64,000 bases of DNA from Klebsormidium nitens (Eukaryota; Plantae; Klebsormidiophyceae): the NCBI GenBank assembly GCA_000708835.1, contig DF237278.1, forward strand, positions 1 through 64,000, in the 5' to 3' direction. Position 1 is the stretch's first letter, and the number at the start of each line of letters is the position of its first letter. The notes under the pieces were generated by a model that was not told where the DNA came from, searched no databases, and saw only the letters and a program-made list of their open reading frames with translations. Of this stretch, positions 1,468-54,683 are shown one piece after another. Both the position numbers and the translations under genes were made by a program.

Positions 1468-4400
1468 TCACAGCCCCCCCCAGGAGTTAGCCACGTCCGA
1501 CCGGGCGGTCGGGTGCCACGGCACGCACATCTTTTGCATCACCTCCCGGTTGGCCATAAAGTCCCGGGGCATCACATACGAGCTCAGCGGCCGGAGGCCG
1601 TATGCGGACGCCGTGACGGACAGCCCGGACGTTTCGAAGACGTACATGTTGCACCGGGAGTACAGATCCCACTCGGCGACGGTCGACGCCATCGCGGCCG
1701 CGGCCGCGCCGGGGTGGTCGATGTGCGCGGGCTTGATCGCGGTCGTCAGGACCTGCGGAGGGTGAGGGCCGGGTTAACGTGCGTTTCAGGGTTTGGGAGA
1801 CGTTTGGCGGTTCCGATCTGGGGTCGAGATTCAGCGAAAGTGCGGTTCCTGAACTCGCAGAATCATGTCAGGACCTCCCATGCGGAAGGTGTGGGATATC
1901 GGTGAAGGTCTGGAGGTCTGGAGCGGCGCTTATTGACTCGGGGATTGAGAGACCGGGTAAAGGAAACGAGGTGTCTCACTCAGAGATGCACACGCTACGA
2001 TGACACGTCAGGACGCGCTGACCGCTACCAGAAGCAGCCCCCAATCTGAAATGAGTGGGAAGAGAAGTCGCAGCCCAATGCATTTAAAAGCAGGTTAAGA
2101 GAGTGGGTTAGTGAACCCACCTGGGTGGTGTTGGCCAGAGCCAGCTGTTTAAGCTCGTACGAGGAGCTGATGAGGAAGATGCGCGACCGCTTGCATGCTG
2201 GCGTCATCCAGTACGACATCAGGGACTGCGCCAGGGGGCGACACGTGTCAGCTTATACGTTAGCACCTGGAAGCCTCACCGTTTACACATGACGAGCGAG
2301 GGAGCCCTCGAGAGGCGGGCTGACGTCGATCCAACGGTAATGATGCCGACGAAAGACGAAGCGAGTGGTAGGTCCAAAACGAAGCAAATGGAGTGAGGCT
2401 TTCTTCTAAGTCTGGCGCGCTTTGTAGGCGCTTATGGACGGCCGCACGTTGCGACACGATGTCAGAAGCCTTGTCAGCGATAAGCAGAGGAGACGTGTCG
2501 GAAAGCGGACAATTGTCTATACTCCCTTCAGAAGATGTCCAAAGCGGAGTCTCGCAAACCCACATGAAACCTGATACAAAGCACCGTCCGAGACCAGTCC
2601 AGCTCCCATCCTAGCTCTGCTTGTCTCTCGTCCAAACCAGTCCAAAATCCGTCCGCAGCTTTGCCTCGGGTGTATTCAGTCCCCGTAGAGCTCGAACTGT
2701 TAATCCAGAACCCTTCTCAACAGAAAAACGAAACGCCCACACCTCCTGCCAAGACCGTCCGTGACTTGCTCAAAACCCGTACGTCCGGATTCAGACCGAT
2801 AGCGCGCCTTGCCTGCACGCACTCCGCGTGGCTGCTGTTCCAGGTCACTTCAAAAGCATCGTCCAAATCTGTCCCCCAAGCGATGTGAACAATGTTGTAA
2901 CGTGTTTGGAAAAGGCGTCCGAATCGTGTCCGAAAAGCCGTCCAAATCCTGTCCGGAGACAGCGCCCCACCAGTACGCACTTCATGTACAGCTGCAGCTG
3001 CGAAAAGCAAAGGCCAATAACTTTCCATATATTGCCAAACCCCCCGTGACGTGTTCCGAAAGTCGTCCGAGTCGTGTCCAAATCACCGTCCGAAAAGTGT
3101 CCGGATAAAGCGCCTCACCTGTACGCACTCCATGTACAGCTGCAGCTGCTTTTCCAGGTTACCTCCAATTCACGAGCAAAAGCAACGTTCAGAATCCCTG
3201 CCAAGATCGCCCAGGATGTCTCCAAACCCGTCCGAATCGTGTCCGAAACAGGTCCGATTTCCGTCCGAAAAGTGCGTCTCACCTGTACGCACTCCATGTA
3301 TAGCTGCAGCTGCTTTTCCAGGTCGCCTCTCCGCTGGCCCATCATGGCTTCGTCGTTCAGCCGGATGTGGACGCACACGCTGAACGTCTCCGGATCTTCC
3401 AGCTGGCGCGCGATGGCATTGTAAGGTCGGGAGACCTCATCTTTCACCCTGCGTAAGGCGTTTGAGAAAGGGTCAATCACAGGGTTTGCGGAGGGTTTGG
3501 CTGAGGTTGGCCATCCGAGCAGTGGTTCAGAGTGAAGAGGGCAGGAATACACTGATGGTCCCAGATAGTCTTTGTGTTGGGAGTTGCTGAAACTCAGTCT
3601 TGGTCCCTTATGATGGGGCCGGTCTGTGGCGTACTACGGGTAGAATGAGCTTTTCAGCACGACTTTGCAGGTGGCGTGCTCCTCCTATGCTGGGCGGCAG
3701 GCTTTCTCTGAGTACTAGCGGCATTGGGTTGGAGAATTTTGCCCCTGCAAAGCGAACGGATTGCAAGGTCTTCAATGTACGAGATGGAATGAGATAAGAA
3801 ACTACAGAAACGCACCGCATGAGGAACCGGTTCAAGCAGCCCCAGGCATAAGGCGGCGTCAGCCCCACTTGCTCGTGTATAGCCGGGTGGTCATGCAGCC
3901 AGGTTATGACCCGCCCCTTATTAAACCGCACAATCGCGATCCGCGTGTCGCCTATGAGCTCGTGCATCTCCGGGAAGGTTAGCATCTCGCGGTTGATCAG
4001 GTTAAGGATAACCACGTCCCTGCAAGCAGGGCAAGCAGGCGGGTTGAGTCATTAGGGATACCATAACCTTCGTTCACTGGACTAAACCGGCGCCGCAATC
4101 TCGTTCGCCTTAGCCAGGCCAAGGGATGACGTCTTCTGGGAGATCAAGTGTCGCCTCTGGCAAGCCCGTAAACCAATGTATGGTCGGCTTAAAAGGCGTA
4201 TTGAAAAGCTTTTAAACGTGGCTCCTCACTCTTCGCTCGACATCTCTGAAACGATCGACCGTCGACTTGATCCACGGACTCAGGATCCTGCCTGATCTTT
4301 GACACGAGGTTGAAGAACGCGAAGACGTGTACACAGAGCCTGCAGAAAGCACTCCTTTTTGGAACTAGAGGCGCCTCTCCGAAGCGCTCTTATTGAACCT

Positions 4401-6282
4401 TTCCCGGCTCAAAATTTCTCTCCAAAAGCGGTACCGCAGCAAGTGCAACAACTCACTCTCCACGCTTCTCCACGTCCCCCCACGTCTTGCTGTTGTTTCC
4501 CGGCAAAACGTATCCATCCGGCAGCGTCCAGTCGACCTCGACTGGCTCGAAAGCGGAGAGCGCGGCTGGCCAGTGCAAGAAGACCGCGCGGTCCGCTATA
4601 ACCGAGTACAGCAGCGAAGTGGTAAAGCCCTTCAAAGAGTCGCCCAGGCCGCCGCATGGGATGCCATCTCTGAGGAGAGAAAGGGGGCGACGCTTTCGTT
4701 AGACTCAGGTAGTTCCTGGGACAAGGACTGGAGAAGAAACTACGCGCGCAGGTGATATATAATGGAGCTGCGGATGTGGAGCAGCAAGGAAGTTAAGGCA
4801 ACTCGTCGTCCTGGTGTTATAGAAAAACCCTCACGATTGCGCCATCGACCTATTGAAAAGAGAAAATTTATGAAAAAGATTCTATGGCCAGCTTAGGTCT
4901 TATGGGTGTTGAGAAAGTCAGAAGACTTTCAGCGCTGTGGCAGCCAGCACCTTAAAGTCGTATGGCCCGATTTTTGCAGCAGGACCTTTCTCAGAACCAT
5001 TAGAGCTCTCGCTTTTCGAGAACTTAGATCATTGCCCAGGTCGCGCTCATGAGTTGCCCGTCACCCATTATAGGATATCCCGCTAACCCGCCTGAACCAA
5101 GCGTAACCCGTGTATTTCCAACGGTAACCCGCCTGGAAACCAAGCGGAACCCAGCTCACTCTTGGCTGCTGCACACGAAGATCAGGATCTTCGGCAGCGC
5201 ATCCGGTTGCCCCTCTTCCCACACCAGAACGGGCAGCCCTGTCTTCTGATCGAGCAATCCCCGCCGCACAAACTCCGCCAGCTGTCGGCGCCAGAGGGCG
5301 TGTTTCTGCTTGTACTCTTCCTGCCACGTGCCACAGAGGGGCCACATGTGTATCCCGCTATGGTCTTCGAGGTCGCCCCCGCAGACGCTCGAGGGGGGGG
5401 AGCCATGGGTGGAAAACAAATGCTGGGAGCTAGGCCGCCTGTAAGGGGAGAACCTACTAGCAAAGCGTTAGGACTGCTTCGGAGTGGTTTGCTATCAATG
5501 GTTAGTAAAGAAAGGTCGAATTTGAATGGGTTAACAATTTGAATTAGGGTGGGTTTGGATTTGGGCAGAACCAATAAACGAGAAGTGGTTAGGTCAGGGT
5601 CAAGTTGGTTTAGGGTTTTGTTTGTAGTGGCACAGATTTGCACGTGCAGCTCTGGCTTCTATTTTACCTGCTTCTGCAGTCATGGAATTGTAAACCCTAG
5701 TTTTCTGGGATGCTAAAAACGTGAGGCATTCCTTTCTCAAGCTGAAAGCAGAGACTTTGATCCGAGGCCGGGTCCCCAAACCCTAATTACCAACCAGCGC
5801 CAGCCAATCGTATCATACAGTAAGCAACTCCAGCACGATCAAGCTGACGCTTTGATACACAACTTTCTCTGCTCTGCGCAAACTCCAGGCACCTCTTAGA
5901 GCCTCTCTGTGTGTGATTCTTCACTCACCAAGATAAACAACTGCTACCACCCATGCAGCGACGTCAGCGCAAATTGCAGACTGAAATTACACACCACAAC
6001 ACACTTGCAGGGTAAAGTCTCCTGGTCCCAAGCATCCTGAGCTCACCAAGCGTTTTCCTTCTCCAGGTTGTGCTGTACCAGTGTGTACACGTGGTAACAA
6101 GACAGGAAAATGATAACACTCCAGTACAGGTAGCGATGCTGGAATGCGGCCAACGGACCCCACCGCCCGCCGGAGGCAGTCCCCTTAGGCGCATACTTGT
6201 CGTTATCCTTTTCTTCGGAAATGCTCCAGAGAGAATACTCCTGTAAGTCCCGCTCTAGGTCCTCTGCTTTAGCGTTCATCAT
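1468..6282 (-). CDS. Fucosyltransferase-superfamily (GT-B; GT37/GT23-like) type II membrane protein, 7 exons, ~495 aa
   Basis: Exons (5'->3'): 6282-6047, 5438-5160, 4669-4457, 4019-3816, 3448-3283, 2225-2121, 1752-1468. All junctions are GT-AG and phase-compatible (1488 nt). N-terminal TM segment is YLYWSVIIFLSCYHVYTLV. Motifs: CGGLGDSLKGFTTSLLYSVIADRAVFLHW, WGCLNRFLMR, VCVHIRLND (motif I), IFLISSS (motif II), and HID...TVAEWDLYSRCNMYVFETSGLSVTASAYG (motif III-like). Confidence 0.85.
2620..3282. repeat. Degenerate tandem repeat in intron 5 of gene 1: GTCCGA-rich spacer plus copies of the exon-5 3' end
   Basis: The segment ctcacctgtacgcactccatgtacagctgcagctgcttttccagg near 3114-3158 copies the exon-5 end and its donor. 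More degraded copies lie near 2969-3000 and 2811-2850. gtccga/tccgaa motifs are frequent between them. Confidence 0.85.
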
Positions 6283-7995
6283 GAAACAGCCCGGAAAGAC
6301 GGCTACAGAGGATGTCTTGAACTGAGCAAAGCGTGACTCTAGGTGGTGGTAAAAGTTGAGCTGCTGGTTGTTTGTTAACCACTCCAGCAAAGTTTGCCGA
6401 TAGAAGAGTGAGTAATCAGCAGCTGCCAGTACTTTCCTTTTAGCAGGGCCGGGACTGTCAAAATCCACTCTGACGGACCAGTAAGTGAGAGTGCGACAAT
6501 TGTTTCTGCTTTCACCAGACGGGGAAGAACAGAAGTGGTTATGTTATGCAGATTTTCGGGCCGTCTGGACCAAAGGGACGGATGCTGATAAGAACGGCCA
6601 GCTGCTAGAAGTATCGCGCTCTCCAATTCCAGGTGCTCGTGGTATCGTGCTTTCCAGTTCCAGCATAAGCAAAGCAGAGAAGATTAGGCAGCGGAGATTA
6701 TCTTGGTAAGGAAGCTTGTGGGCGTTTCCTGACGGGAATGGTTGAGTCTAGTGCGCTAAATGAGCCTGAATCTTCCTGAACGCCACGTCTTCACCACAGC
6801 TGGCAGTTCAATCAGAGCAAGCAGCTAAGCGGGGAGCAACTGCTGCAAGCTGAGTGCCTAGGATTGTCTAGCATGGGACGTGAAGGTGCAGGTTGCAGTG
6901 CTCAAAGCAAACCCTAATCCTGGCCCTCTAAGTTTTAGATAGTACTAACTAGCCCGCCAAACCAGCTCATTGGCCCAACTTCCAAGTGAGTTTTCTTGAA
7001 CGCTGGTAAAGAATCCCATGACACGAGCATGATGGCAGCAGATGTGATGACAAGGCGCACACAGATATGTTGATATATGGATCGGATTGCTCAAGATTGA
7101 CCCATATTACCTTGGATAACGATTTCATCACCAATATATCAGCTCAGAAAGCTGAGTACAGCGAGTGAGCAGCTACCTACAGCTAGACAGACGTGAAACA
7201 AGGTACGCTCCTTGCAGTATGTAATCACCTACGCCTGTTTATGTGTCGAAGTACCTAGTCTAAATGCTTGTACTCAAGGCTATGCCGCGGACTTGGTAAG
7301 TGCAGGGGGGCTGCACGTCGTTAGAGACCAACTACCTAGTAGAGTGTACTAGGTACGGCCGGTACCTTCTTGCCAGCTGGAATCCGTGCGTCACGTGTAT
7401 CATGTTAGCAATGTGTCCACAGAGTTGCAGCCTTTGGACAAGTTACAACACCAGTACTCTGCTAGCTGCTGCTAGCAGCTGCTGCAGCTACCTAGTAGCT
7501 GCCCAGCTGTGCTGCAAGTGACGTTGGCAAGAGCACACACTGCATCGAGTTTTGCGTACAAGAAGCAACACCTACCTACTGGGGATTGCGTCAAACCTGA
7601 TACCGGCCGGTGACGGCGCTGCCAGTCGCACACTGTCGAGCAATATTCCCGATATCGTCAAAAGCAATAAGCCACCGGAGATCAAGGGTTTGGCCAGCTC
7701 TGTTTCGTTCCCAGTCACCGCCCAACCGAACCACAAGGTCGCTTTTGTGGCGCATCGAAACCCTCGTCTCAAGGTTTGACGATAACACATAAGCATACGG
7801 CTTATAAGCAGGGGATTAATGCGAGGTAGTGTGCGACGTGCAACGTCCACCAGAGAACCGACAGGACAACTGAGGCGCAAGCTGCGCGCAACTAGATCTG
7901 TAGTCTGACAACACTCGGAAATTGGTACCTATCCCTTTGTCGCTCTGAAGTCTGGCAGTCTGAGTGAGACAGTCTGATCAAGACTCTGAAAACAC

Positions 7996-8507
7996 GTACT
8001 GGTGAGTCTGGTGAATCGTGATACCTAGGTACATAGTACGGTACATTGGTGAGAGTCCGAGCGGGCACATGTCTATGAGCCGTAGTACGTACGGTCGTAC
8101 GTCATGGATATCCAGGGGCCGGAGTTCAGGTCGCATCTGAATTTTGGAGTCCAAGATTCCTGGGTACGGTATCATTTGGCAATGATGACTCAGTTTGTAC
8201 CAATTATACTGCCATTACTGGTGACGATCGAGCACCCACCTGCAAATTATTGCAATCGCAGTGTTGCAAGATTATTTAAGTAGAAGCATTCGCCATGCAC
8301 TACCCTTCCTCGTAGCTGCTCGGACCACCCGTACATACCGGGGTCCGGACGGTACTACCGTACGGGAGCTGACCAGTTTCCAGTAATTATTTTTGCAGCT
8401 GGTCCTAACTCCCAAGTTCCAACTTCCACGGAATCCACCTGTACTGGCCGGCCGTACTGCACGTCTACCTTGTTGCCAGTACCTGTACGTCTACTGCAGG
8501 TACGTAC
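7996..8507. promoter_or_regulatory. GTAC-dense cluster in the divergent spacer between genes 1 and 2
   Basis: About 18 GTAC counted by eye in ~510 bp, against ~2 expected at equal base frequencies. More are scattered over 7150-9200. Regulatory function is inferred, not shown. Confidence 0.5.
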
Positions 8508-9389
8508 TAGCTGGCAACTCCCTTGTCTCTTATGAATAGGGGCTTGTCTCCTAAAACTCAGAAGCCCCGGGCACACCAACCAAAATCCCTAACCCAAAAC
8601 CTTACGTGCTCCGCACCGTTATCCACCCTAACCACCAAACCAACCCTCAAACCCAACCCGTCCACCGGCCATGAACCTTAGTAGAACAAGCCCCCTAACG
8701 AGACAAGGGAGTTGCCACAATCCGTAGACAGTATCCAATAGGCTAGTGTGCACCGAGGCGGCTTGGCCGTGCGCGGCGTGCGCACTGCGCTGTGCGAGCT
8801 GTGTCTTGCAAGTACTGGAATGTACGCCTGCACCCGACGGTGCGTGCACGGTTCAACCTATAGAATCCGGGCCTAGCTTCAGGCACACAACTCACGGTCA
8901 GCATACTGCCGGTACGTACCGGTTATTCTTTTTGGCCGCACAGGGATTCGGGAAGGGTCAAGACTGGCTACTAGTAGTAGTACCGGCCTGCATATCTAAC
9001 GGCAAACCTGCATGTTGCAACACTTTGCCCTTCTTAAACCGCCAGTGTGGTTTACTTAACCGGCTGATAGGTGCGTCTACGCTGTTCAGCTCAGAGCATT
9101 GGTGGCTCCTGCTGTCAAGAGTTTCTGAACAAGTGGTTGAAGCTCGTGAGGGACCCCGCTAAAAGTCAGATCTCAAGAGACTCAAGCTCAAGTTTTACTA
9201 GGTACTAGAGCTTGCAGCTACCATGCAAGGGCACAGAACACAGTGTTGCTGGAGTGTGCATCCAACGCTGAGCAGGACGTCCACATAATACCTACATTAC
9301 ATTCGCCTACTCTAGAGCCTAATCAAGCGGTCTCAGCTTGAGCAGACGGTGAGCTGGGCTGGTGCAGTAAGAGTCTGCCAGCTGTCACC

Positions 9390-12300
9390 ATGGGGCGGCC
9401 AGCTGGCGTCGGCCTGTGGGGCTCTGTTCCAGCTGACACCCGCCGCACATTGTACATCCAGCTTGCGGGCATCGTGTTTGTGACGCTGCTCTGCGTGCAC
9501 AACCTCTTAGAGCTGCTGAGCAGCGATTACGGCCGGGGAAGTGCGGACGGCGTCGGCAGCTGGGTCTGGAGAGCGGAGACTACGTACTCGTGGACCAACT
9601 TCGGCGGCAGGGTGAGCTGCGCGTTTTTGGCCATGTGGGCAGTCCACTTTACAAAGTGCAATACTAGATAGTATTTTCAGCTTACTTATTTGCACTTGTT
9701 TGCACAGTCAGCAAAGCAAGCAAGAAGTCCCTGCATTGGAAAGAGTTGCTGGTTTACCCGCTTCCAAAAGGAGGCTGACATCAGCAGAGCCTGCTGCTGG
9801 AAAAGGCAGCGAGTGCGTCGCCAGGCAGACTGGGCGGACCGCGTGACGGGAGTGCGGCGGTATCTGGTCCTAGGCTGCTGCCACCTGTTTGTGTGGCAGT
9901 ATTTTTAATCCTGCAAAAACACCAGCTCGAGGACTTCGTTTGAGCATGTTCTCACGCAGTAGGAATGTGAGTAATGGACAGCCACTGCCAACTGCCGTGC
10001 CTGTCGCCAAGAGACTGCTTACATCCAGATATGTGCGCAAAGGTGCGCAACAGCTCACGATTGGAATCAATCATGCACATTTTACCATCAGCCCCTGACG
10101 CATGGCTGCTGTAAAAGCAAGGGATTGCAAATGTGTTCACTTGCACTTCAAAAATTCGTGAGGCAATGCATTCAATCTTTTCATTCAGCTACTATGCTGC
10201 ATCCTCAATTGATTTATCTGCCAGAAAATTGTTTGATATCTACCTTAGAGTGAGGCCAGAGGAAATTTAGGGTTCTGCAAAAAAGTGGTTGTTGAAAAGG
10301 CTGTGTCAAGTCTCCGCCCAGAGTTAGATCAACATTAATGAGCAGGCCCTTCATCTAACAGGTTTCAAAATGGGCCCCAATACGAAGTGCCTACCCGCGG
10401 AACTCTAGGCTTAAAATCGGCCACTGCAAGCGCTGACACAACTGCCCAACTCCGTTCGTGGTATCTATGCCCATCAGGGCTACGAGCAAAGATCTTCTTG
10501 CCTCCAGTCATAGCATTGGGCCTCCACGCAAGCAGAAGCAGGGAGCGCTTGGGTTTGTTGTCGGACTGGGTGCCTGCTGAAGGCGTGTCAGCTGGTACTC
10601 GATCTTTCCCTTCACCAGTACTTGGGAAGAATGAAGGTCTCTCTCCGACCCTGTATACGGCTGGGCACCAAAAGCTCCGGCCCGACTTTCCGCCATATGA
10701 CGGAAAAGCTGAGGTTTACCATTACAAATTGCTCACCGCTGGACAGCAGCTCCAAAACAGACCTTCTCTTAAAGTGGGCGTAGGCCGTCACGCCGACGGC
10801 ATCACCGTAGCGTGACGGCGACAGAAAGCAATCAACATTGACCCTCCGATAGATTCAACTCGGTGGTTTGTACCGTCCGATCGGAAAATGACTTGCGAGC
10901 CCTACGCCCACTTTAAGCAATGAAATTCCAAGCCCTCAAACCCACCCCCTTGCTTTTTCCCAGGTTAAGGAGTCGGGCGTCAAAAAGGAACCCGGCCCAA
11001 ACCCCGAGGCAGCCAGCCTCCCCCCCTTCAATCTGGACTGCACCGCCGCCCAATTTCTCGAGTCGGTCGCGACAGGTTCAAGGAACGGAGTTCGGGACGG
11101 GCCGTTTCACACCGACTGCCAGCTGTACAACTACACCAGTTCGGAGGCGTGCGGGGTGCTCTCGTCCTTCGATTCGATACTGGTATTTGGGGAGTCGCAC
11201 GAGCGACACTTTGTCCAAGGTGAGGCAGAAGCGGGAAAGCTGAGTCTTCACGTATCGAAGGGTTAATTGATCAGGTTTAGGGCTCCAGCTTCTCAGGGTT
11301 CTAATTTTTGGTGTCAGTTCGAGGGTCTTAGGATATTAGAACTGAGTCGATTCTGCTCGTGATGTCTACCGTCGTGGCGTGCCGGTTGCGGCAGATTTAT
11401 GGTTCACAGCTAGTGACGTTGCCGGAGCTGTCCGCAATCCCCTACAGTATCTCCACTGGCCTCGGGCTTATCACAAGCGCTGAGAGTATTGTCTGCCTCT
11501 TACGGTTCGACGGTTTTGGGGCCAAAGCGAGACTATGAAACGCTTCCTTCTCCCAGCAAGGGATTATGCGCGAAAGGACCCCCTGCTCGCAATGGACATT
11601 CGCGGAAGCGTTTTCTCAGTCGAGCAAGTCGGCGGTTGGTCAACAGTTTTTTCTAGATCATTAGTCTCCAAACCGAAAACGATAAAAGGGTGCTTGTCAA
11701 AATTCAAAGTGATTCGCCGACTTTCATTTGAAGGCTACCAAGTCAGTTGCTTCAACAATACAGCTTCTCCAGCGCAATCTTCGATTCAGCGAGAGGACAA
11801 TCGTAATCTTTACAGCGGCTCTCGATATGGCTTCCATTTTTGACACCTCCGTTTCATACTGCTGGTCCCGCATCTTGCCGTCAGGTCCCTAACAGAGTCT
11901 GGCTCATAATTTCCACTGAAAGATGCTCTGCCTTTCGTCTGGCCTCATGTTGAGGCCCTTGCTTCAAAGGGCAAGCTGCGCATGTTCTCACGAAGTGTTG
12001 AGGATCCTGCCGGTTCCTACTTTCCTTCCGTCACAAAACGATCTTTTCCGAGCTCCACTTCCACAGCTTCTCTGCATTGCATATCAGCCAGCTCGAGGAC
12101 TGCTCACGTCAGCACTGGCTGTGCGGTAGAAACCACCGGTCAATCTCCTGATCAAAGTTGGGGGAGTGCCACCCCCTCGAACCCCTCCCTCGCGACTTCT
12201 GTCGTTGCACGACCTGGAGCAATTCAGTCAGTACGCACGTTTTGGGCCTCTTGACACAACGGGTCTTTTGACCGCAGGGCGAATGTGTCAAAGCAGGAGT

Positions 12301-36683: not shown

Positions 36684-38116
36684 ATGGCTTCCCCGCGCGC
36701 CGCGCTCTTCTTAACCGTGGCCCTGGCCCTCGTTCTGAGCTCCCAGGCCCGTCCCTTGGAGGAGGATGTGACTTCACTCTTCGGCTCCCTGGACGAAGAA
36801 CTAGGCGTGCGGCATCTTCTGGCCGCCAACTCGAGCGAGCCGTGCTGCAGCCTGTACAAGAAGACGTCGACCGACTTGGCGGGCTTCTCGGCTCAGGCGC
36901 GGGCCCTGCTGACGCAGCAGAGCAACCTGCTGACGTCACTGCTGCAGCAACCCGCCATCAAGCAGGCATTGGTCGACCTCCTCGCAAAGGTGGGGTGGTT
37001 GGTTATTCTACTCAACCATCACTTACGGGGCGGCATGTTCATCTCTTGGAACACTCATTGATTGCCGTGCTGATTGTTTATTACTATTCATGAGCTGCGT
37101 CCTGCCTTTTGGTCCATGAGTGACTTGCTATACTGCTCTGGGCCTTACTTGATCTGGTACTACCTCCCTCTCAGGTAGGGTTGCACTCCACCAGGGAATG
37201 AAATTATGCCAAGCTCACTATTACCTTGAGAGCCATGTGTTGTTTTCCGGCTTTCACTCAAAATTGGCAGCTTGAATTCCACAGGAGAACCCGCGCCAAT
37301 GGTCAGATAGGAATGGTTGACCCAAAGCTGAGTTGCAGTGTATAATGTGTGCTGTCAAAGGATCGGTATGCGCTTCTTGTTCGGTTTTGAGTGCCTCTGA
37401 CCTTTCTGCTTTAGCTGTCATAGCTTTTGGAGAGTAACAGAACAACCAGACTGACATTTGTCCAGAAGCTGCATATGCATAGTTAGCCCCAGATTCTCCC
37501 AAACGCTTGCATTCTCGGTCCAAACTAGGTTGATGAAAGCAACAGCTGGCAATGCTGTCGTAATCCAAGCAAGCTGCTTTTCAAGACCCGCTACCTGCCT
37601 GTGGGACCACAGCTTCAAGAGCTTTGACCACAACAAGCTGTCCAATGATTCTATCTAAGGATGAGTCCAGAACCAGGGTACTGGTTCTGTGTCTAGAACC
37701 AGTACCCTTGAAAAGGTACCAGGACGCCCACCTTGTTGAAACCAACATGTAATGCCCACTTTCTTCAAACCCACATTTGACACCCACTCTCTTCAAGCCA
37801 ACAAACTTAACCCCAATTCGTAACCCCTGTGCAGGCGGACAGAACCCTGACCGACGACGGCTCCCAGCTCTTCGGCAACAGGTGCCTCACCCAAGCGCAG
37901 TCAAACACATTCGGCAAGAACCTGCTCATGGTGCGCAACATCGCCAAGGCCGTCAACGATCTCAACGCCATCAACGGACTGAACATCAACATTCTGAACA
38001 TCCGGACTCTTGGAAACTCCCTCATCCAAGCGCTCCAAACGTTCGCTTCCCAGTCAGTCGCAATCGGCGCAGACCTCACCAAGACGGCCAAGGCCCTCAG
38101 CGGGTGCTCTGCTTGA
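36684..38116 (+). CDS. Secreted, predicted alpha-helical protein of unknown function, 2 exons, ~195 aa
   Basis: Exons 36684-36989 and 37835-38116, joined by a phase-0 GT-AG intron. Signal peptide is MASPRAALFLTVALALVLSSQA, followed by an acidic pro-region and RHLL. The mature part has 4 Cys and is Leu/Ala/Asn/Gln-rich. Codon usage is GC3-rich. Confidence 0.8.
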
Positions 38117-40074: not shown

Positions 40075-40375
40075 CGCGCGCGGCCCGGCCCGGCCCACTG
40101 CGAGAAACCTTCTGTCCGAACCAGGTCCGAACCGGATCCGAACTGAATTTGCGGTCCGGATCAGGTTTGGACAGGTTCGGATCCAGTTCAGACACGTTTC
40201 AGACTGGTGCTACAAGACGGACATGAGAGTTCGGATCCGATTCGGACCAGGTGTTTGAATTAGGTTTGGACTCCTTTGGACCAGGATTTCTGTCCGGATT
40301 AGACACTTTCAGACGTAATCCGGACACCTCCAAAATGTTACATTCTGTCCGAAACGCAATCCGAGAGGGTTTCCA
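40075..40375. repeat. TCCGAA/TTCGGA-rich low-complexity repeat, possibly a non-autonomous DNA transposon remnant
   Basis: The GC-rich start cgcgcgcggcccggcccggccc is followed by dense tccgaa, ttcgga and tccgga motifs. A similar tract lies at 60560-60700. Confidence 0.5.
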
Positions 40376-43300: not shown

Positions 43301-44183
43301 GGTTTTACGAGGACTGCATAAGGTGGAATTTCAAACGATTCGTCGCTGTGCCAGCATATTTTCCATGACGTTCACTTTGAGAATCGGTAATCACCACCAT
43401 CTTTATTTTTTGCAGAGAATCTCGGGCTTGCTTAAGTAGATGCTTTCGAAGTGCAATAGCTAGCGAGGTGGCACTCATCATCATTGTAAATTCATGCCCG
43501 ACCGCGTCTGTCCGCATCATCTCGAAGCGAAAGTGAAAGTATCCGGCGAGTCAAAGCTAGTGTAGTGGCACCTTTATGAAGTTCCCAGGCAAACACATTG
43601 AGAATGTTCCTGACAAGTGAATGCGGACTTTGGGGCCGGTATTCTAATGCAAACATCAAGCATGCAATCTCGATGATTGTGGGTAATGAAGAATGGGTCG
43701 ATGTAAGCGTGGTCAGTCTCGAACACGTTCCAGAGATAAAGGTTTGTATATTGTTGTCAATTGCAACAAAACGTTGAACACTGTTGAGTTGAGGCTACAG
43801 CTCGGTAGGAAAGCTGCCCGCTTCCTTCGTAAGGCGCGCACAATTTGGCGCAGGTCCTACTAGTGCTTGTTCCAGTGTTTGGCTAGGATACAGAAACTTT
43901 CTAGGCTTCACATCGACAACTAGGACGACAAAACTCGTAACCAAATATCGGCGTGTGCCGGTTAATCAATACGCGCGAAGCAAAGCGCAGAGCCTTTCCA
44001 TGGCCGCCATCCAGTCCCGGCCGCCCCACCCGAACCCTCCCACCGTTTCTAAATAGGGCACTCGTTATTTGCATGTGCTCGTATACCCGCCGCTCGACCT
44101 CCTACATGAAGCTGATCTCGATATATCTAGTGGAGCTCGAATAGGACTGAACCAGTAATTACCAACCGGTCACTTTTGAGGGG

Positions 44184-47100
44184 TCATTTCCGGGCGATTA
44201 ATGGCGACCGGTTGGTGCACAGTTCGTGGTCGTGGCAGCCCTGCATCTGCCAGGCCCAGCGCATGTTGGCGATATTCTCCGAGAAGATGGACCCGTGGCT
44301 GCTGATGAACACCGTCGATGACGCGCAGATGAACTTCTCGAGCAGCGCTTGCACCTGCGATCACGAGGGGAGCTTTTACTTCACTGAGTTGAGTGCTGCT
44401 TTTTACGCATTGGAAAATTTGGTCTATGAGCTTTCAGAACAACAGAGATTGTCGATGTTTTCTAAGAATTGGGGGAGATTTGTGTGTGGGACTTCAGGAG
44501 AACGAACAGCTTCAAGGAGGCTTTGGCAGCGCTTCATAACTTGCGGCTGAAAAACAGAGTCGAGTCGAAGCCGGGCAAGCTTGTAGGTCTAAAAGATGTC
44601 GTTCAACTCCGATGCAGGAAATTGAGGCAGGCTGAATAAAGATCCAGTATTTGCAACTCCAGAACGGAAAGCAACGAAATCCAGGCGCAAAAACGCAGTC
44701 AATGGAAGCAGGTTAGACGTGAAACTAGAGGCTGAGTTCGTGATCCGCCAACAAACTGCTGCGAATCAAGAAGTGGGCCTCTACTATTACAGATCGCGAA
44801 ACGGCCAGTCCTTGGCCCAACGATACGGTTTGCCCCACGAAACTGGTCAATGAACTGTTCAGCAAATCGTGATGAAGGTGGACCCCCGCTGCAAACCCGC
44901 TCCCAAACCCACCTGGTTAGTGGTCGGTAAGGACTTGGCCCAGCGGTACTGGCCCCAATCGTCCATCCCCGGGAGGCGCACCGTCTGGATGCCAGCCATC
45001 GCCAGGAGTGACGTCAGCTGCTCCATCTCGGAACTGGGCGCGTTGGTCGCCATGAAAAGGGTGCGGATGCCACTACCGCGCAGCCCCGCGATGAGGCACT
45101 CGGCGACCTGGGGGATCGGGATGGTGACGTAGCGCTCGTCGGGGGAGGTGTTGATGCGTGTGCTGGGGGAAAGGAAGAAAACAACTTTGAGAAACTTTCA
45201 TGAGCTGTTTGGAAATCCAGCAAAGGAAAGTGACTTGGCGAGTTGAAGATGCGCGGGGTGCAGGTGTGGAGGAAAAGAAAGCTGAGCGACACTGTGAGAC
45301 GACCATTTAGAGAAAAGAGCAGAGGCGCGGGTCGGAGTGCTTTTGATGGAAACAAAGGGGTTGCTTGATCGTATTCTTGCAGAGTTCTTGATAGAAAGCA
45401 ACCAGGCTCTAGCGCCACGTGCCTTGGGAGAAGTGGGAGGTGGTTATCCGTCTCATCTCGCTTATGCCTGATTTGGACAATGTGAAGAATGTTCGCAAAT
45501 TAGTATAAATTTCCCTGCTGCCAGGCCACTTTCGCTTGGTCTTTCCTTCAAAATTGGGTCCTCGGAGCGTATCAGGGAGCAAAGACTGAAGGCAGGAGAA
45601 CGCAACTAGACTCATGCAGAAACAACAAAAGCTGGCTTCAGGATTGAGGACCTCCAATGAAACTAGAGGCAAGCCGAATTTTAGAATTGAAGTACCAAGG
45701 ACGTTTTGGCTCCTCACAATTTGCTCTGGTCCCCCGTGAGTTTGACGTAGTCCAGGAAATCCCCCCTGCGGAGGTGGACTGCCGCATATTCGCTCCCCAG
45801 CGCTGATAGGATATACTTCTTGGCGGCCAAGCGGATGGTCCCGCTGGGTTGCAGGACCTCGTTCACCAGATTGCACTTGACGCTGGGGTTGTATTGCCAG
45901 AGAGTGCTAAGGTGGGTTGCTTCTGACACCTGTCAAGAAAAGTACGGTCGTTGTGACACCTGTCAAAGAAGTCCATCGGATGTGGAGTGGGGTTGAAGTC
46001 CTCAAAGCTTGCGGCGTACCGCACAGCTTTCTTCATTGTTTAAGGCTTTTGAGAAAAGCCCTCCAGTGAGTGAGCCAACGAGATCCTAGTCAGGTGTATG
46101 GGCTCAGACAGCTGGTTGACACGCGGGAAGAAACGATTTGGTCAAGTTGCCCGGAAAGAGGAGGCAAAGATCAGAACAAGATGCCTGCCGCCAACTGGGG
46201 CAGCTGTTATGGAAGCGCCAGAAGAGATTTCTGTGCATTTGTTGGTGCCGCTTAGGAACCTTGATAGAGAAACTGGCGATATAGTAAACAGCACTGGCAC
46301 AATTGGATCAAAAAACTGACAAGACTCAGCGGATCTTATTTGAAATAACGGGAGTTTCTGGTCAAGTTTGGTTTTTTTTGGCTTGACAAGAAGTTGCTCA
46401 GGTAGGCAGAAGCCAGAGAGGGCTTATAGGACAATCGATGCATGCACCTCTGGAAAGCTATGCTCGGCCGATTTCACATGTAAGGGAGATGGGTAGCATG
46501 GGGTGCGACCGCATTAGAGCATCGCTGGAAACAAGGGTTATCCTTACCAGTGACACTCAAGATCATGGCTGTCGACCAAAATGCTCTACACTTGATAAAG
46601 ATCTTCCAAACCAGTACCACATCACCATACACGATAAATATTTCCAATGCCCAAAGGATGAAAGACCCAACAGCGCAAACTTCTTGCTCCGTAGGAAACT
46701 GCATCCTTAACATGTACCAAAGAGGCAAGCGAGAAAGCTTCATTGTCTGCAGCGTTGCCACGCAGCTCAACAGCTTTATGCAAAGCAGGCTAGCGCATTG
46801 ACACTAGCTTGCAAGAACCAGTCGCAACATGTCTTGGAGAGCATGTGTTCAAACACTTAGGGAGGCTCATCTGCTCAGCGTCAGCTGCTTCTTGCATCAA
46901 AACTGCTTCAAACAGAGATGGAAGCCGTTCAAATGAGCCCTTCTGCACACTCACCCACAGGACGTCCGCAGAGAAGTTGAGCGCAGTCTGGACGTCTGTG
47001 ACGTCACTCCCCAGCACGTCGATCGCACCAAACTCTGCATGCAGCATATCCTTTCCCAGCTGCATTCCCCCCACACACCGCTGCTTCTCGTCAATGTGGT

Positions 47101-47748
47101 ACACACACAAACCCTGGACCGTTAACCCTTGGTTAACCTGCTGGAAGTCTGCCCACGACAAGCTCTGCGCTTCCCCCGTGCAATAGTTGGCCAGCCTCAA
47201 ATCCAACACGTCGGCGGGGTCTAGATCCACCTGCACATTGTCCCCCCCGCTGCTCTCCTCCAGCTGCGTCCACGGCGCAATGACGAGCGTTCTCTTGAGC
47301 GCGACCGCAAGGTTCATGCTCTTTTGAAGACACACCATCCGGTTTGAGAACCCCCCAATGTGGCACCCCGCAATCAGGTACTTGTTCTCCGCAGCTTCCC
47401 AGGGGACGTTCCCCTCCAACATTCCCAGCTTCCTCTGCTGACAGGGGGCCCCCTCCTCCCAACTGATGAGCGATGCAGTCCCGGCTTGGGAAAGCGGGGC
47501 CCCCGCGGGACTCGCCGCCCGTTTCAGGTCCCGCATCTCCTGCCGCAGCGAGACGACCGTCTCGTTCAGCGCATCCTTCAGCTCCTGGACCCCCCCCCCG
47601 GAAGTGGGGGCCCTGCTTGGAAAGCTGTCCTCGGCGCGCTCGANNNNNNNNNNNNNNNNNNNNCGTACCAGCATCGTGAGGACCCAGCACGAAGACCGAT
47701 GGAAAGGTCGCGCACGCTGAACGGCAGGCGGAACCCTGTTGTCTGCAT
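44184..47748 (-). CDS. GDP-fucose protein O-fucosyltransferase family protein (paralog C), 4 exons, N-terminus interrupted by an assembly gap
   Basis: Exons ~47748-46955, 45929-45718, 45162-44913, 44354-44184. Motifs: KYLIAGCHIGGFSNRM, YAAVHLRRGDF, LFMATN, LLEKFICASSTVFISSHGSIFS. Internal exons are 212 and 250 nt, and the exon-1 junction DVLW| is the same as in A and B. The start codon is uncertain. Confidence 0.85.
47644..47663. other. Assembly gap (20 N) inside exon 1 of paralog C
   Basis: Run of N in the sequence. Confidence 1.
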
Positions 47749-48247
47749 GGCCTGGTGTTGGTGCGAGTACGGACTGCCCCCCTGTTTTTGGGCGCTTGCT
47801 CGGGGCGGCGAGTGCATGCCTTTTGAGCTCAGGGACAGCTTTTCTCGCAGCAGACTTTCTGCCCTGCTGCTTTTTGTGGTGACTGTGGGAGAAGTGCAAC
47901 CAGGGGAAAAGAGCTCTGATGCAGGGAGAGAGCTGCGCTGACTTGCGGGCGGCTGTTTGGAGCTCAGCTGAGGCTCTGAGCTGGAGGGAGGGCGACCACT
48001 CTAGTTTCTGGAGCAGGCTTGGTTCTTCCAGAGACGCACTGGAGCTCCAAGATTGCGGGGAAGATAAGGGCTGCTAGCATGTCGCACCTCAAAAACCAAG
48101 GGAGCTGAGTGGAGCTAATACAGACTGAGCTGAGAGACTAGGAAGTGCACGTGCTCAAGTGGCTGTCACTGCAAAGGGCTTTCTCTGCGGGCGAGCTACC
48201 TGGTTCTCTCTGCTTTCTTGTCAAAGTGCTCTAAGGTCGGCGAAGTC

Positions 48248-49373
48248 AGTACCAAACTGGGAAAGACGGAAAGATTCTGCTGGAGGACGGTAAGATTTGT
48301 CCTGTCCGTCCGATGGTCGTCATGGTCACTGACAGCTGTGCGGAGATAGCAGCCGACGCCCTACTTGGTACTGCTCCTCGCTGAGTCTTGTTCGCTTCCA
48401 AAGCTTTAGGGGACGCACCTTTCAGCTGTACTCCACCATTCACACTATGTAGCATCCGTCATTTAGTTGCAGCATGTACAGACTAGGTGTACCGGTAGGT
48501 AGTATACGTACGGATGCTGCTTATTGTTATGTGACATCTTACCGTACATATTACCGCGTTTTTGCAGCTCTGTACACCTGTGCTGGTCGCTGCGCGAGCC
48601 TAGAGAGGTGAGCTAGGTAGTGAGGCTGCAGGCATCTTGACGTCAAGCGAGGAATGTCTGTACCTGTTCATTGTCAGGACTCTGTTCCTGTTTCTGCATA
48701 ATGGCCTCCCAGGCTCTTTCAATGACATAGGTAATCGCTCCAGCAAGGTGGAACGTCGCTCTTGCTGCTGTCAGGTCAGTATGCCGTAGACGTTGCGAGT
48801 GCGGGCACCTTCGAAGTTTGGCGCACTCTTGAGTAGGGTATTGCCAGTTTGCCTGTTCACATTGCACAGTGCGCAGTGCACACCCTATCTAAAGGGTGTA
48901 CTGATGTGTGCTACGGAGACCCGATCGACCTCACAAGCCGAAGGTAGCTCGAGGGTCTTCAGTCGACAAGTGGCGAGCCGCCACGTGTACAAGGGTTCTT
49001 GTTTGCAATAATTGCTTGTCGGTGTCTAGAGTACTGACGTCAAGAGCGCTCAAATCAAGCGAAAGTAAGTGCGCCGGTCTGCAGACGGTGTCGGTCTGTA
49101 CACACAGTCGACAGCCAAAGTACTGAAATTTAGAGCGGAACTGCCTGCTAGGTACACTGAGACAAAGTTGAGTTCAAATGTACCCGATAGAGCGGCACCT
49201 GAAGGCCGACTCCGAGTCCCAGTTGAGAGGACTACGGTACCTAGCTAGGTACCGGCATACCGTAGCTGGTAACAGTCCAAGTGAAGTCATAGCGGTCGGG
49301 TTGCGCAATGTGGAAGCCCTAGACCGATCCCGCTTGTGCAGTATGCTCCTCATGAGGATGGTCTGTACCGGTA
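48248..49373. promoter_or_regulatory. GTAC-dense cluster in the divergent spacer between paralog C and gene 8
   Basis: About 20 GTAC counted by eye in ~1130 bp, against ~4-5 expected. Confidence 0.45.
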
Positions 49374-50179
49374 CTACCTAGATATTACCCACCTAGATTT
49401 CCTGACGGTGTGCACATGCTTCCTGTTGGCTCACTGCTAGCTAGCTGCCAGTCGCAGCCACCTGATACAAAGTATCATACTTAGTATACTTACCTAGTAT
49501 GAGGTGGGAAAGGCACCCTTCCCGTTTTCACCCCCTTGGCACCGCGAGCCACCTGTGCCTGTAAAGTGCCAGTATTAGGGGAAAGAAAGGGGGGGAATTT
49601 AAAGCCTTTTGAACGGTTTGGAACTCTGCGGTATAGGTACCCTAGCAGCCAGCAGAGACTGCCTCCCCACTAGCTACTCAGTAAAGCACGTTGCTTATCA
49701 TCAGCCCTCTTAGCAGCTGTACAATCTAGAGCGACCCGTGCTTGACAAGCTGTGTACGTAAGCTGGCGTCAGCTGCCCATGACGCTACAATATTTTGGCG
49801 CAGCCTCAGCGTATGTCAGCAATGGGGCGCTGTTCCTCGCACCAACGACAGTACCTACGTTCGCTCTCATCCACTTCGTCTTCGCCCACAGCTCAAGAAA
49901 AGAAAAAGATAGACTCCCAGCCACACTCTACAAGAACGCAGAGTCCGCAAGTGGAGGAAGAAGCAGGAAAGGAGGCCGCCCCCTACGTCGGATTGACTCT
50001 CCAGCTTCCCACTCGAGCTCCCCTCTGCGCTTCCTTCTTCTCAGCTAAGAGTACTGAGCTCCCCTTGCCAGCAGCTGGCCCCCTCCTTGTCAGCAACTAC
50101 CCACTCCGTGTTAGCCACCCCCCTCCTTGTCAGCACCCTCGTACTAGACTTGTAGAAGGAAAGTCTGTAGGTAGGGAAG

Positions 50180-53100
50180 ATGGTAGCAGCAATGACTGCA
50201 CGAGTCCCGGTGTCCCTGCTCCTAGTCACCGCGCTGCTTATCTTCTCGCAACCGGTGCAAGGATACCGGCGCGGGCTGAGCACCTCGGGCGGGCTCCTTG
50301 TGCATAGCACGGACCGACAGCTGTTGCAGGAGGGGTCCGACAACCCTTGTGGGCAGTTTCCCGCGGATGATCCGTTTGACGGCGTGCGGATCGGGCAGCA
50401 AACCCCAAACTGGCACGAGCCGTGCCGGGACAGTTCCGGGGTCGTTCAGTTTTGCTGGTGAGGGTTTGGGGCTTTCACTGGTCTGTGGTGAGCTCGGTTT
50501 CATGTTCTGAGGATTGGCACAATCTAGGTTGGAAGTGGGTTCTTCTCGTCTGTGGGTATGGTTATCAACTACTGGTGAGCATGGAACATGAGGGAGTTTA
50601 TTGTGACTTCCTTTGGGACTCCTTGATCGTGAGCTGAGGCCTTTCCGGTTGCGTAACATTATGTGTTGGATCCCTGGAAAGGTCAGTGCAGCTTTAAAAC
50701 CTTTGAGGATAACTTTCGAGGCAACACTGGACCCGCAATAAAGTTCAGCACAAGGAACAATATTCCCCTCTCAACCTGGCTGGTGGGCTTTGAAAGCTTG
50801 GCTCTGCCTATGGACTCATCTGTGTTTGAGAGTTGTCGAGTTGGCAAAGCATAAAGCTTTTGCGGGTGCCATTTTGGATGCAGCACATTTTGGGCTGGGG
50901 AGTTTCTCAACCTTTTGAGATGGTGGCTAGAAAACTTTGCAGAGCTCAATCAGAACGATATACTTATGCTGATCAGGCAAAGTGACCTCAGTGTCGAAGG
51001 CTAGTAAGTCTGGTCACATCTTTGGTAGGAATGTTTTCCAAAGACCAGACAACACGAAACCTCAAGAGAAGTTTGAAAGGGAAAGCCCAGAATGTCTGTG
51101 TCATTTGAATGTGGACATGTGAGTAAGAGTAAGACAAGCCTGAGGGCTCTGAGACGTGTGAAGCTTTTGTAGCAAAATCAAGCTTGGTTGAGAGAAAACC
51201 CACTACTGTTATCAGGAGGAAAGAGAGAGCTGGATAGCGATTGTGGAACCATCAGAATCTGCATTCTGCTTAGAAGCTGCCAATCACCCCTCACACTGAC
51301 CTCAGAGACCAGCTCCTGTTGAATAATGTAGGGCCTTTGAATGGATTCCTTTAATCGAGCTGCTATACTCATTCCTATCCTCAGCATTCATATGGTTTTA
51401 CGGTGAAAAGCAAGCCCAATGTCCTGAAGGCCTTGTGTTTGCATGTGCAGTTCAGCGGGCTCCACGCAATGTGCCTGCCCACCAAACCCTCCCACAGCAG
51501 CAGGGCCTTTTGGGTGCTACAATTACGTGAGTGCCCTCCGTCGTGTCAGCTTTCTACATTTTTGATCAATACTCCCCAGGGCCTTGCTGACAAGATTCTA
51601 GAGCCTTTACTGCAATCTGTGTGCATGTCATCATGAGCACAGATGAGCACAGACGAAGCACTGATGAGTAACTGAACAAGAAACCTTGCTACAGGACAAA
51701 TCCAGGTTAGTGATCACATCGCAAAGGAACGGCACTACCAAAGCAGGTTTTGAGACACGACACGTTTGGTTAAGCGCAATTTTCATCCGATCCAGTATGT
51801 AATATGACAATCCGGACCTCTGGGAGCATGATAGCCAGAGCTATTGAAGTACCAGGCCCGGAGAGAGTGTTAGTAATATACCAATCTGGCAAGCGAAAAC
51901 GGTTCCATCACCAATTTGTTTTCTCCATGGCTTCTTCTCCAGACCGATTATCCTTTGATAACCTCGAAAAGCTCTAGTCGGTACGTTTTGACGCTTCAGA
52001 AAGTGCATGGCACGGTGTGCGAGATGGACGGACTGGTTAACTATCGAGCCTGAATTTGTTATGCGTACACCAAACCATCGGCCTCTTTAATTCGGACGTT
52101 GGACTCAACATGCCGCGACCCTCTATGTTTCAATAGACTTAAGACCATTGCCGCCTGCCAAACATTCCCCTTAACTCTCGTCTTGCTTTTGTCGCCAGGA
52201 TTGTGACCGCAACTTACTAATCCCCTTTATCTCTCCCTCTTGTGGCTTCGCGCGGCGCATTTGTACGCTTCCCACCTTCTCCCAAGTCCCAAGCCGTTTA
52301 TGTCGATTCCCTTGACTTTCTCTCTTCCGAAACCCAAGCCTGACATCTTCCGCCGTTCCTTTCAGGTTGACAGCAACACTCTAAACTTCAACACAGGCCA
52401 GCAGTGCGGGTTCACCCTCCCCAGCTCTCCTGCGACTCCAAGCCCCACCTCTACGACTCCGTCCCCGACCTCTGCAACTCCCTCCCCGACCTCTGCGACC
52501 CCCTCCCCAACTTCGACAACTCCCTCTCCAACTAGCACCCCCTCTGCGACTTCCTCTCCAACTTCCGCTCCAACAAACCCCCCCGGTGGACCGTGCACCA
52601 CGGCCCCGAGGGGATCCCCCGGGTCCGACGGCACGTGCGGGTTTGACCCCGCCGGCCAGGGGTACAACCTGTGTACGACGATGGCTGGGGTGGGTCTCCG
52701 CTAACGACTTTTTTGCGGTTCGTGCTTAGGATTGAGTCCCCCTTTCCACCGGAAGCCTTTTGATGCATCACGTAGGTGAACGCTCTGCACGGTGTTTTAC
52801 TTTTCTGGGGCGTGTGTCGATCGTTCTTCAATTGCTGTGTACGAAAGGATAGCTCTCTGCATGACGAACCGGCGTATGCGCTTCTTCGGTGAGCTTTTCT
52901 TTGGCGAAGACAGACCCCCTACATTCAATTTCCTCTGCTTAGACGTGGTTCCTTTCCAATATAACGTCTGTTTGCATATGTGCAAAAGTTGTCTTGCCCT
53001 TGATCATCATATTCCTCTGTTTTGAAGCTAAAAGGAAGTCCTCGCGCTGGAAGGAGTTCGTGCTGCTGAAATCATTGCGTCCTCTGAAGCTCGCGGCCAC

Positions 53101-54683
53101 CCGATCGTTCGCTGAACCGTAACATGATACTGCCGATTACGACACGAGCGCGTTAGGTCCGGCCGGCTACGTCTCTGAACGAATTCTTTGCCCAAAACTT
53201 TGTGTTTCTTGTGATTGCTTCCATTTCCCGGATGTTCAATTCCTTTCATAGGACGCTTACTTGTGGTCGGATCTCTCTTGGATCGTTTCTCCCTGATACC
53301 TCTTCATCAATTCCACGTCGAAGCTCTCAATCAAGTCGACAATAAAGACCGAAGTCATCAGCCAAGCTTGCTAGCAATTTCGTGGAATTCGTGGGCTTCA
53401 ACTTTGCAACCAAGATCCAAGTCGCTAACCCAAGCCGCGTCTTTCCGCTGTTCCACAGATCCAATTCTGCCGCCAAACTGGCTACGCTGGCCCCACGGCG
53501 GAGGCCTTAACAAGCTTCCAATCTGCTAACCCACAGCGTCAACCCCAGCCGTCTTTCCGCTGTTTCGCAGATCGCGTTCTGCTGCGAAACCGGCTACACC
53601 TGCCCGACGGCGGACCCGGTCACGGCCTCCAACCCGAGCTTCGCTCTCCAGGTCTACTGCCAAGCGCTGGGGCCCTGCGCAGACACCCCGACTTCCTCCC
53701 CCACAAACGCCCCCACAACAAACCCCCCCACAACGAACGCCCCCGCAACGAACGCCCCCACAACCAACGCCCCCACAACCAACGCCCCGACGACTTCCGC
53801 CCCAAATACTCCCGGCCCTACCCCCGTCGCAACCACCCCCTCCCCCGCCCCCACTTCTGGCCCCCCCAGCGGGTGCCAGACGGTGCCCTCTTCCGGATCT
53901 CCCGGCGTGGACGGAACCTGCGGATACGACCCGTCCGGTCAGGCGTTCAACGTGTGCTCAACGGCGGGAGGGGTAAGTGCTTCATCCTGACGGCTCTGAT
54001 CAACTTAAGTCTTTTGCTAAACTCTGGTTGAGTTCTCAGTTCAGTCTAGAGGTATTTGGCGCAAGATAGACGCCCGGGAGACGGACGGAACCAGTGGGTG
54101 CCATTAGGGTAGGGGTCGTCAAGATTTCAGGTCAGTCAAAGAGGTCAAAACGTCTGCAAAACGTCTGCTAAGTGAGATGAGACTATGAGCCTTTCCACCA
54201 TGTACTCCCTTCCTCTACCGAGAGCAGTATATTCGCTCAGGTCATATTTCTGGTGGCTAGTAGCTTTGTAGCAATATGAAGCGCATTTTCAACCCGTGGA
54301 AGTGCTGGACGATCGAGCTTGCGTGCCCGAATGGAGTCGGCGATTGCGACATCAAATGCTTTCACAAGGAGTAACAAAGATTCAACCCTGAGTCAGGTTG
54401 TGACGTTGACTGTGACCGTTCTAAAGACTGCGACCAATCCTGCGCTCTTTTTGAACCCTCGGATTTCAATAATTAGATAGACTACATATCTGGGCACTTT
54501 CTTTTCAGCTCCCGCAGTCTTTCCCTGAACAAGAGTCATCTTAACCCGGTTCCTTGTATTCTTCAGATCCAGTTCTGCTGCCCACAAGGCTACATTTGCC
54601 CGATCGCCGGGTCCGTCGCACCGTCCGGTGGCTCCAACGCTCTGCAAGTATTCTGCCAAGTGGCCGGGCCGTGCGGATACTAA
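50180..54683 (+). CDS. Secreted protein with three 8-Cys modules separated by Ser/Thr/Pro-rich mucin/HRGP-like linkers, 5 exons, ~398 aa
   Basis: Exons 50180-50457, 51451-51526, 52366-52689, 53571-53972, 54567-54683 are phase-compatible (1197 nt). Signal peptide is followed by RQLLQ. Linkers are (TPSPTS[AT])n and (NAPTT)n. Modules 2 and 3 are clear homologs (GSPG.DGTCG.DP.GQ..N.C.T..G|I.FCC..GY.CP...ALQV.CQ..GPC). Confidence 0.85.
52425..52570 (+). repeat. ~21-bp coding repeat encoding TPSPTS(A/T)
   Basis: The translation SPATPSPTSTTPSPTSATPSPTSATPSPTSTTPSPTST lies in gene 8 exon 3. Confidence 0.9.
53695..53800 (+). repeat. 15-bp coding repeat encoding NAPTT
   Basis: Repeated aacgcccccacaacc-type units lie in gene 8 exon 4. 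Confidence 0.9.

Follow-up and report, generated by a model that had tools for sequence, protein, structure and literature searches.

A neighbourhood of putative Golgi glycan-tailoring enzyme and extracellular protein genes on scaffold DF237278.1 of Klebsormidium nitens

The first 64,000 nucleotides of the Klebsormidium nitens scaffold DF237278.1 (101,893 bp) were analyzed here as one stretch, hereafter the window, which has the same coordinates as the scaffold. The window encodes eight predicted genes, g1 to g8, including those of putative fucosyltransferases (FucTs), an SGNH-like membrane protein, and secreted or surface proteins. All eight gene models are free of stop codons, all of their introns are of the GT-AG type, and their strand order (-,+,-,+,-,+,-,+) bears out a preliminary description of this DNA. 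The four divergent pairs described there, with spacers of 2.4–3.2 kb, were likewise recovered: the ATG-to-ATG spacers measure 3108 nt for g1/g2 (6283–9389, 3.1 kb), 2700 nt for g3/g4 (21008–23706, 2.7 kb), 3167 nt for g5/g6 (33518–36683, 3.2 kb), and 2432 nt for g7/g8 (47749–50179, 2.4 kb). The NCBI annotation agrees on the lengths of g2 (404 aa) and g3 (312 aa) and also calls g4 and g5. A codon-usage scan that recovered the known exons found no further genes between the eight, ten intergenic open reading frames gave zero Pfam matches, and Rfam returned nothing in the window; these checks, together with the NCBI annotation, revealed no hidden genes interrupting the alternation. The proposal that all eight products are secretory holds for g2–g6, g8, and the ortholog of g7, which have clear N-terminal hydrophobic segments (hydropathy peak at least 1.6), while the anchor of g1 (residues about 51–69) falls below this threshold and is plausible but weak.

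The genes g4 (23707–28054, + strand; 4 exons, 494 aa), g5 (29899–33517, - strand; 4 exons, 532 aa), and g7 (44184–47748, - strand; 4 exons, about 491 aa) belong to one family. The inverted paralog g5 is 62% identical to g4 with identical intron positions, and g7 is a more distant paralog (42–46% identical to the other two); all three genes have three introns at matching positions, and their internal exons measure 212 and 250 nt. The g4 protein matches PF10250 with 40.9 bits against a cut-off of 31.5, and g5 and g7 were assigned to the family by paralogy. A profile of 65 sequences matched POFUT2 (E 1e-23) and POFUT1 (E 1e-15 to 1e-17), and a Foldseek search with the predicted structure of g4 (pLDDT 80.5) matched POFUT2 and POFUT1 (E 1e-13, TM about 0.5–0.55), followed by NodZ, AtFUT1, and FUT8. 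A single-sequence fold of g4 (pLDDT 35) was rejected. The nearest named relatives are plant ‘O-fucosyltransferase 36’ proteins, and the best full-length matches (25–33% identity) come from Chara, Mesotaenium, and angiosperms. In the tree, g4, g5, and g7 fall in a long-branched Klebsormidium clade with support of 100/100, and the position of this long branch relative to the plant GT68 (OFUT36) clade is a polytomy. Sequence and predicted structure together indicate that the three genes are local paralogs in a Klebsormidium subfamily of the POFUT-like GT-B fold (PF10250) related to plant GT68.

The predicted enzymes resemble GT-B transferases that use guanosine diphosphate (GDP)-sugars, and the designation ‘fucosyl’ is a suggestion from the fold. 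The catalytic Arg of motif I (HxR) is present as HLRRGD in g4, g5, and g7. Motif II reads ASD in g4 and g5 and ATN in g7, where Asn replaces Asp, and motif III is S-I-F in all three. Protein O-fucosyltransferases are enzymes of the endoplasmic reticulum (ER) lumen that act on folded EGF or thrombospondin repeats. The g4, g5, and g7 enzymes carry a type II signal anchor and a C-terminus without a KDEL-like tail, and by these features they would not be classed with the ER-lumen O-fucosyltransferases. In known enzymes, GDP is bound by the motif II Asp and by a motif III that reads S-T-F; for the plant GT68 proteins the function is unknown, and one of them, Arabidopsis At5g50420, shows co-expression with genes of pectin synthesis (PMC3522684). 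The preliminary description had placed one FucT in each divergent pair, which the PF10250 assignment and POFUT fold uphold for g4, g5, and g7; the fourth, g1, is weakly GT37-like and below the cut-off. The public models of g4 and g5 look wrong: the NCBI g4 model (P0002, retrieved by a protein search with g5 exon 1) consists of residues 43–494, beginning at Met43 without the anchor (window 23707–23832), and the 566-aa NCBI g5 model includes a 102-nt duplicated exon start (30034–30237, with candidate acceptors) that is omitted from the 532-aa model. Intron 3 of g5 also contains a seven-copy array of a 40-nt repeat (30442–30977), and a 52-nt duplication of a donor site lies at 30981–31084.

The type II anchor of g7 spans an assembly gap with 32 partly wrong letters (47644–47695). 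In two studies, RNA contigs run from 47643 directly into 47696 and have 101 letters where the window has 52, and in a third RNA study the window letters 47685 and 47695 are surplus. The distance from the ATG at 47748 to the catalytic domain is therefore 53+101+2 = 156 nt, or 52 whole codons, so that this ATG is in frame with the domain. A g7 ortholog from another sample (83–86% identical) has the same 52 codons ahead of the shared stretch and a clear anchor. All three introns of g7 (3/3) were seen as RNA joints, exon depth far exceeds intron depth, and both g7 and g8 were transcribed in three RNA studies, with transcription of g8 seen at its 5′ end. Thus, g7 is intact and expressed, and its membrane anchor across the gap is confirmed by the ortholog. 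The possibility that the gap marks a frameshift or break in g7 was rejected given the in-frame RNA joins and the ortholog.

The divergent genes g1 and g2 appear to encode two further enzyme types. The g1 protein (1468–6282, - strand; 7 exons, 495 aa) is a weakly GT37-like member of the FucT superfamily with a GGLGD motif and HIR as motif I; its exon 3, searched alone, matches XG_FTase (PF03254) with E=0.0024 and 16.9 bits, below the cut-off of 23.4. No similarity was detected between g1 and g4, g5, or g7. As xyloglucan was not detected in Klebsormidium (PMC8211770), the acceptor of g1 is probably not xyloglucan. The g2 protein (9390–14775, + strand; 4 exons, 404 aa) is a predicted type II membrane protein with SGNH-like GES and DGSH motifs, for which an exon-by-exon Pfam search found no family. 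Exon 3 of g1, exon 4 of g2, and the exons of a related contig described below were also compared with the PDB and gave no meaningful match. Together, g1, g2, and the g4/g5/g7 family are three adjacent enzyme types without mutual similarity, as expected of a biosynthetic cluster.

The remaining genes encode predicted secreted or surface proteins. The g3 protein (KFL_003290030; 16628–21007, - strand; 5 exons, 312 aa) has a signal peptide, three 6-Cys EGF-like repeats, a transmembrane segment at residues 257–275, and a short tail; its EGF exon found only itself in homology searches. The g6 gene (36684–38116, + strand; 2 exons, 195 aa) is absent from the NCBI annotation and is a well-formed predicted gene with a signal peptide and no known family in exon-level searches, and it had the best per-codon score among the genes in a leave-one-out codon test (G+C at third codon positions 0.82). 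The g8 protein (50180–54683, + strand; 5 exons, 398 aa) has a signal peptide and three related 8-Cys modules, of which modules 2 and 3 are close to each other and module 1 has diverged; the stalks between them are 85% and 68% Pro, Thr, and Ser, and neither exon-level Pfam searches nor an Atlas search with one module matched a family. The sequence C-X4-T-C occurs in one of the three EGF-like repeats of g3 (repeat 1), with a chance probability of about 0.38, and in one module of g8, and is absent from g6; its occurrence in g3 and g8 is at chance level. No POFUT2-type C-X2-S/T-C sites were found. A motif R-x-L-[LKRQ] lies 20–30 residues past the signal peptide in g3, g6, and g8 (20959–21007, 36684–36830, and 50180–50330), which we take to be a possible pro-peptide cleavage site. 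Duplication of g3–g4 and g5–g6 as one unit was considered and rejected, as g3 bears no relation to g6 and the spacers are dissimilar.

The frequency of such an arrangement by chance was estimated for an assumed 16,000 K. nitens genes and an assumed secretory share of 10–25%. Perfect alternation of eight genes beginning with a minus-strand gene has a probability of 1/256, which corresponds to about 60 runs per genome, and it yields four divergent pairs automatically. Given the alternation, one transferase in each pair has p=0.23. The orientation pattern is therefore no more than chance, and the perfect alternation is best read as incidental to the history of the locus. The all-secretory run is borderline, with 0.02–4 such runs expected genome-wide when the three paralogs are counted as one.

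A 122 kb metagenome contig (Joint Genome Institute), covered from 35.5 to 112 kb (77 kb), provided a comparison with a relative. The contig was taken to come from a Klebsormidium-like alga because it encodes a g2 ortholog (79% identical in the last exon) with shared introns. The genes of the relative lie in the order SGNH-motif (+), SGNH-motif (-), FucT Y (+), FucT X (-), g2 ortholog (-), GT23-like FucT (+), B-lectin-like (-), and GT69-like (-), so that the strands (+,-,+,-,-,+,-,-) do not alternate. All eight genes in the 77 kb are glycan-related, the SGNH, lectin, and GT69 calls being made from motifs and sub-threshold Pfam matches. The GT23-like gene (L009 10814 to L011 13461) encodes a multi-exon, GT23/FUT8-like type II FucT with an HVRQGD motif, a weak FUT8 Pfam match, and Atlas matches to O-FucT and XG_FTase clusters, and the GT69-like gene is GT69/CAP59-like. 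Neither tblastn nor phmmer detected g1, g3, g6, g7, or g8 in the covered 77 kb. The g2 ortholog faces the GT23-like enzyme, not g1, in a head-to-head arrangement (1.75 kb), and the FucT in the position of g5 faces an SGNH-motif gene, not g6. Between the g2 ortholog and FucT X, 3.6 kb contain no Cys-rich open reading frame, so that g3 is not in its place. FucT X occupies the position of g4, and a clade of g4 and X was rejected (p-AU 0.002), which indicates that the tail-to-tail FucT pair was rebuilt or homogenized, that is, turnover. Thus, g2 and two FucTs were kept, five genes were not found, and other glycan genes are present in a reshuffled neighbourhood. Both divergent pairs of the relative are FucT/SGNH pairs, as is g1/g2 (p about 0.09 among its eight genes). 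The contig with the g7 ortholog is too short for comparison of the g7/g8 pair, and no further loci were found in metagenome and viral contigs. A Copia-type retrotransposon (rve, RVT_2) lies inside the minus-strand SGNH-motif gene that faces FucT Y (L005 3687–3842 and 8926–10282; L007 15389–17515).

The four spacers of the window have no mutual blast match and no common 10-mer. A shared promoter motif was accordingly rejected; TGACGTCA occurs in the g7/g8 spacer alone of the four, with 12 copies in the window. In the g7/g8 spacer, the pair examined, RNA reaches 48276 from the g7 side and about 49947 from the g8 side, and 48300–49899 is without an RNA contig in three runs. Although RNA contigs locate start sites inexactly, the two 5′ ends lie about 1.6 kb apart, beyond the usual definition of a bidirectional promoter with start sites within about 1 kb (PMC7817982). 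Three non-coding blocks of this spacer (48328–48428, 49029–49054, and 49091–49127) are conserved at 76–92% with DNA upstream of the g7 ortholog; two of them lie mid-way between g7 and g8, and one contains the palindrome TGACGTCA.

These results may be read, with a little better than even confidence, as a loose, fast-turnover neighbourhood of Golgi glycan-tailoring and extracellular protein genes rather than four fixed pairs. The g4, g5, g7, and g1 enzymes would act in the Golgi and add deoxyhexose to heteroglycans of the wall or mucilage or to the glycans of glycoproteins. The deoxyhexose would most likely be L-fucose from GDP-Fuc, and L-rhamnose is possible; the Klebsormidium wall contains xylose, galactose, rhamnose, and some fucose (PMC11688530). 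The g2 protein may O-acetylate or de-acetylate such glycans, and g3, g6, and g8 would be co-located surface-protein passengers, not dedicated partners. Duplication, inversion, and possibly gene conversion may have given rise to the local FucT copies. Of the wall-glycan cluster proposed in the preliminary description, the part that stands is that the relative keeps g2 beside two O-FucT paralogs amid glycan-enzyme genes; the fixed partners do not. Several points weigh against a loose glycan neighbourhood. The comparison rests on one relative, from a metagenome, with family calls made as noted above; g3, g6, and g8 evolve fast and may be missed or lie in the remaining 45 kb of the relative’s contig; and the secretory share in the chance estimate was an assumed one.

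A rather unlikely explanation, in our judgment, is that one transferase was simply duplicated locally amid unrelated genes, with the runs arising by chance in a genome rich in glycan and secretory genes and the synteny reflecting short divergence. Three of the four transferases are paralogous, the strand pattern is in line with chance, the all-secretory run is borderline, and five of the eight genes were not found in the region of the relative, all consistent with this explanation. On the other hand, their places in the relative are taken by further glycan-enzyme or lectin-like genes (8/8 in 77 kb), which counts against chance because chance replacement would bring housekeeping genes. A truly co-regulated cluster, in which exchangeable FucT/SGNH cassettes build one O-acetylated deoxyhexose polymer and swaps alter the surface glycan between species, seems distinctly unlikely: the window holds no backbone synthase or nucleotide-sugar enzyme, no promoter motif is shared, and the relative’s two FucT/SGNH pairs among eight genes reach a p of only about 0.09. 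This is despite three head-to-head FucT/SGNH pairs with three FucT families (g1/g2, GT23-like/g2 ortholog, and FucT/SGNH-motif gene) and the transcription of both g7 and g8 in three studies, which would fit such a cluster. The model of the preliminary description, in which each transferase and its protein substrate share a bidirectional promoter for O-fucosylation (e.g., g4 acting on the EGF-like repeats of g3), is very improbable. The three testable pairs (g1/g2, g3/g4, and g5/g6) are broken in the one relative, so that the expected conserved linkage was not observed; g6 has no site, g2 resembles an enzyme, and the enzymes are type II-anchored without a KDEL-type tail. The RNA-free interval of ~1.6 kb between g7 and g8 and the lack of a common motif likewise argue against shared promoters, and the C-X4-T-C sequences in the first repeat of g3 and in a single g8 module, which could have served as acceptors, are expected by chance (0.38). 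The closest solved structures, POFUT1/2, and the conserved blocks in the middle of the g7/g8 spacer are the observations that agree with the pair model.

Beyond the eight genes, ~6 kb (38200–44000) and ~9 kb (54700–64000) of the window are without a recognizable gene, and a GC-rich 61-nt tandem repeat is located at 61330–61451. Introns contain degenerate copies of their splice site together with the exon edge (2911–3313, 13203–13236, 14128–14313, 26852–27204, 30034–30237, and 53438–53614), and several such copies are also found in the intron of the g2 ortholog in the relative.

If the loose neighbourhood is functional, gene position may help to assign genes to pathways in this early-diverging alga related to land plants and provide candidate acceptors for plant GT68-like enzymes, whose function is open (PMC3522684). 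A broader and unlikely extension is that Klebsormidium surface-glycan genes lie in clustered, species-variable loci of exchangeable head-to-head FucT/SGNH cassettes, which would make them the eukaryotic equivalent of capsule loci in bacteria; if so, the neighbours would indicate the acceptor of these orphan plant enzymes. The analysis also corrects the annotation, in that g7 continues intact through the gap, g6 appears to be a gene that the NCBI annotation lacks, and the anchor looks to be missing from the public model of g4. Literature searches turned up neither an account of clustered glycan-enzyme genes in Klebsormidium or of scaffold DF237278.1 nor a paper naming kfl00329.

Among known systems, POFUT1 (GT65) and POFUT2 (GT68) resemble the g4/g5/g7 enzymes in the PF10250 match of g4 above the cut-off, the top profile and Foldseek matches, and the HxR of motif I. 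They differ in that the Klebsormidium enzymes share about 17% identity with them and have a type II anchor, S-I-F, the Asn of g7, and a C-terminus without a KDEL-type tail, and in that the window neighbours are without a thrombospondin-repeat consensus. The plant ‘O-fucosyltransferase 36’ clade (At5g50420 group) contains the best full-length relatives, likewise of unknown function (PMC3522684), whereas those of Klebsormidium are locally multiplied and group apart on a long branch. The g1 protein is weakly similar to the GT37 xyloglucan fucosyltransferases (AtFUT1) in the XG_FTase match of its exon 3 and in its GGLG and HxR motifs, although the match is below the cut-off. The TBL/PC-esterases, with GDS and DxxH and the triad described in PMC11360243, are similar to g2 in its type II topology, Ser motif, and DxxH, but g2 has GES instead of GDS and no Pfam or PDB exon match.

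The nearest published analogy is chromosome 19 of the green alga Ostreococcus tauri, where glycosyltransferase and surface-protein genes are concentrated and spatially grouped (PMC5082852). That system is a whole atypical small chromosome linked to virus resistance with many putatively foreign genes, whereas the window is part of a scaffold that is rich in introns and ordinary in GC content, and a search for viral relatives found none. The Klebsormidium wall holds an unusual rhamnoxylan and galactoxylan (PMC11688530). The genes g1, g2, and the g4/g5/g7 family encode non-homologous putative glycan enzymes in one place. In land plants, wall-glycan genes are generally regarded as dispersed. Bacterial capsule and O-antigen loci and the biosynthetic gene clusters of plants and fungi are alike in that non-homologous enzymes (glycan enzymes in the bacterial loci) are co-located and their content varies between relatives. 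Unlike the bacterial loci, the Klebsormidium neighbourhood has no operon, polymerase, or exporter, and it is a putative cluster.

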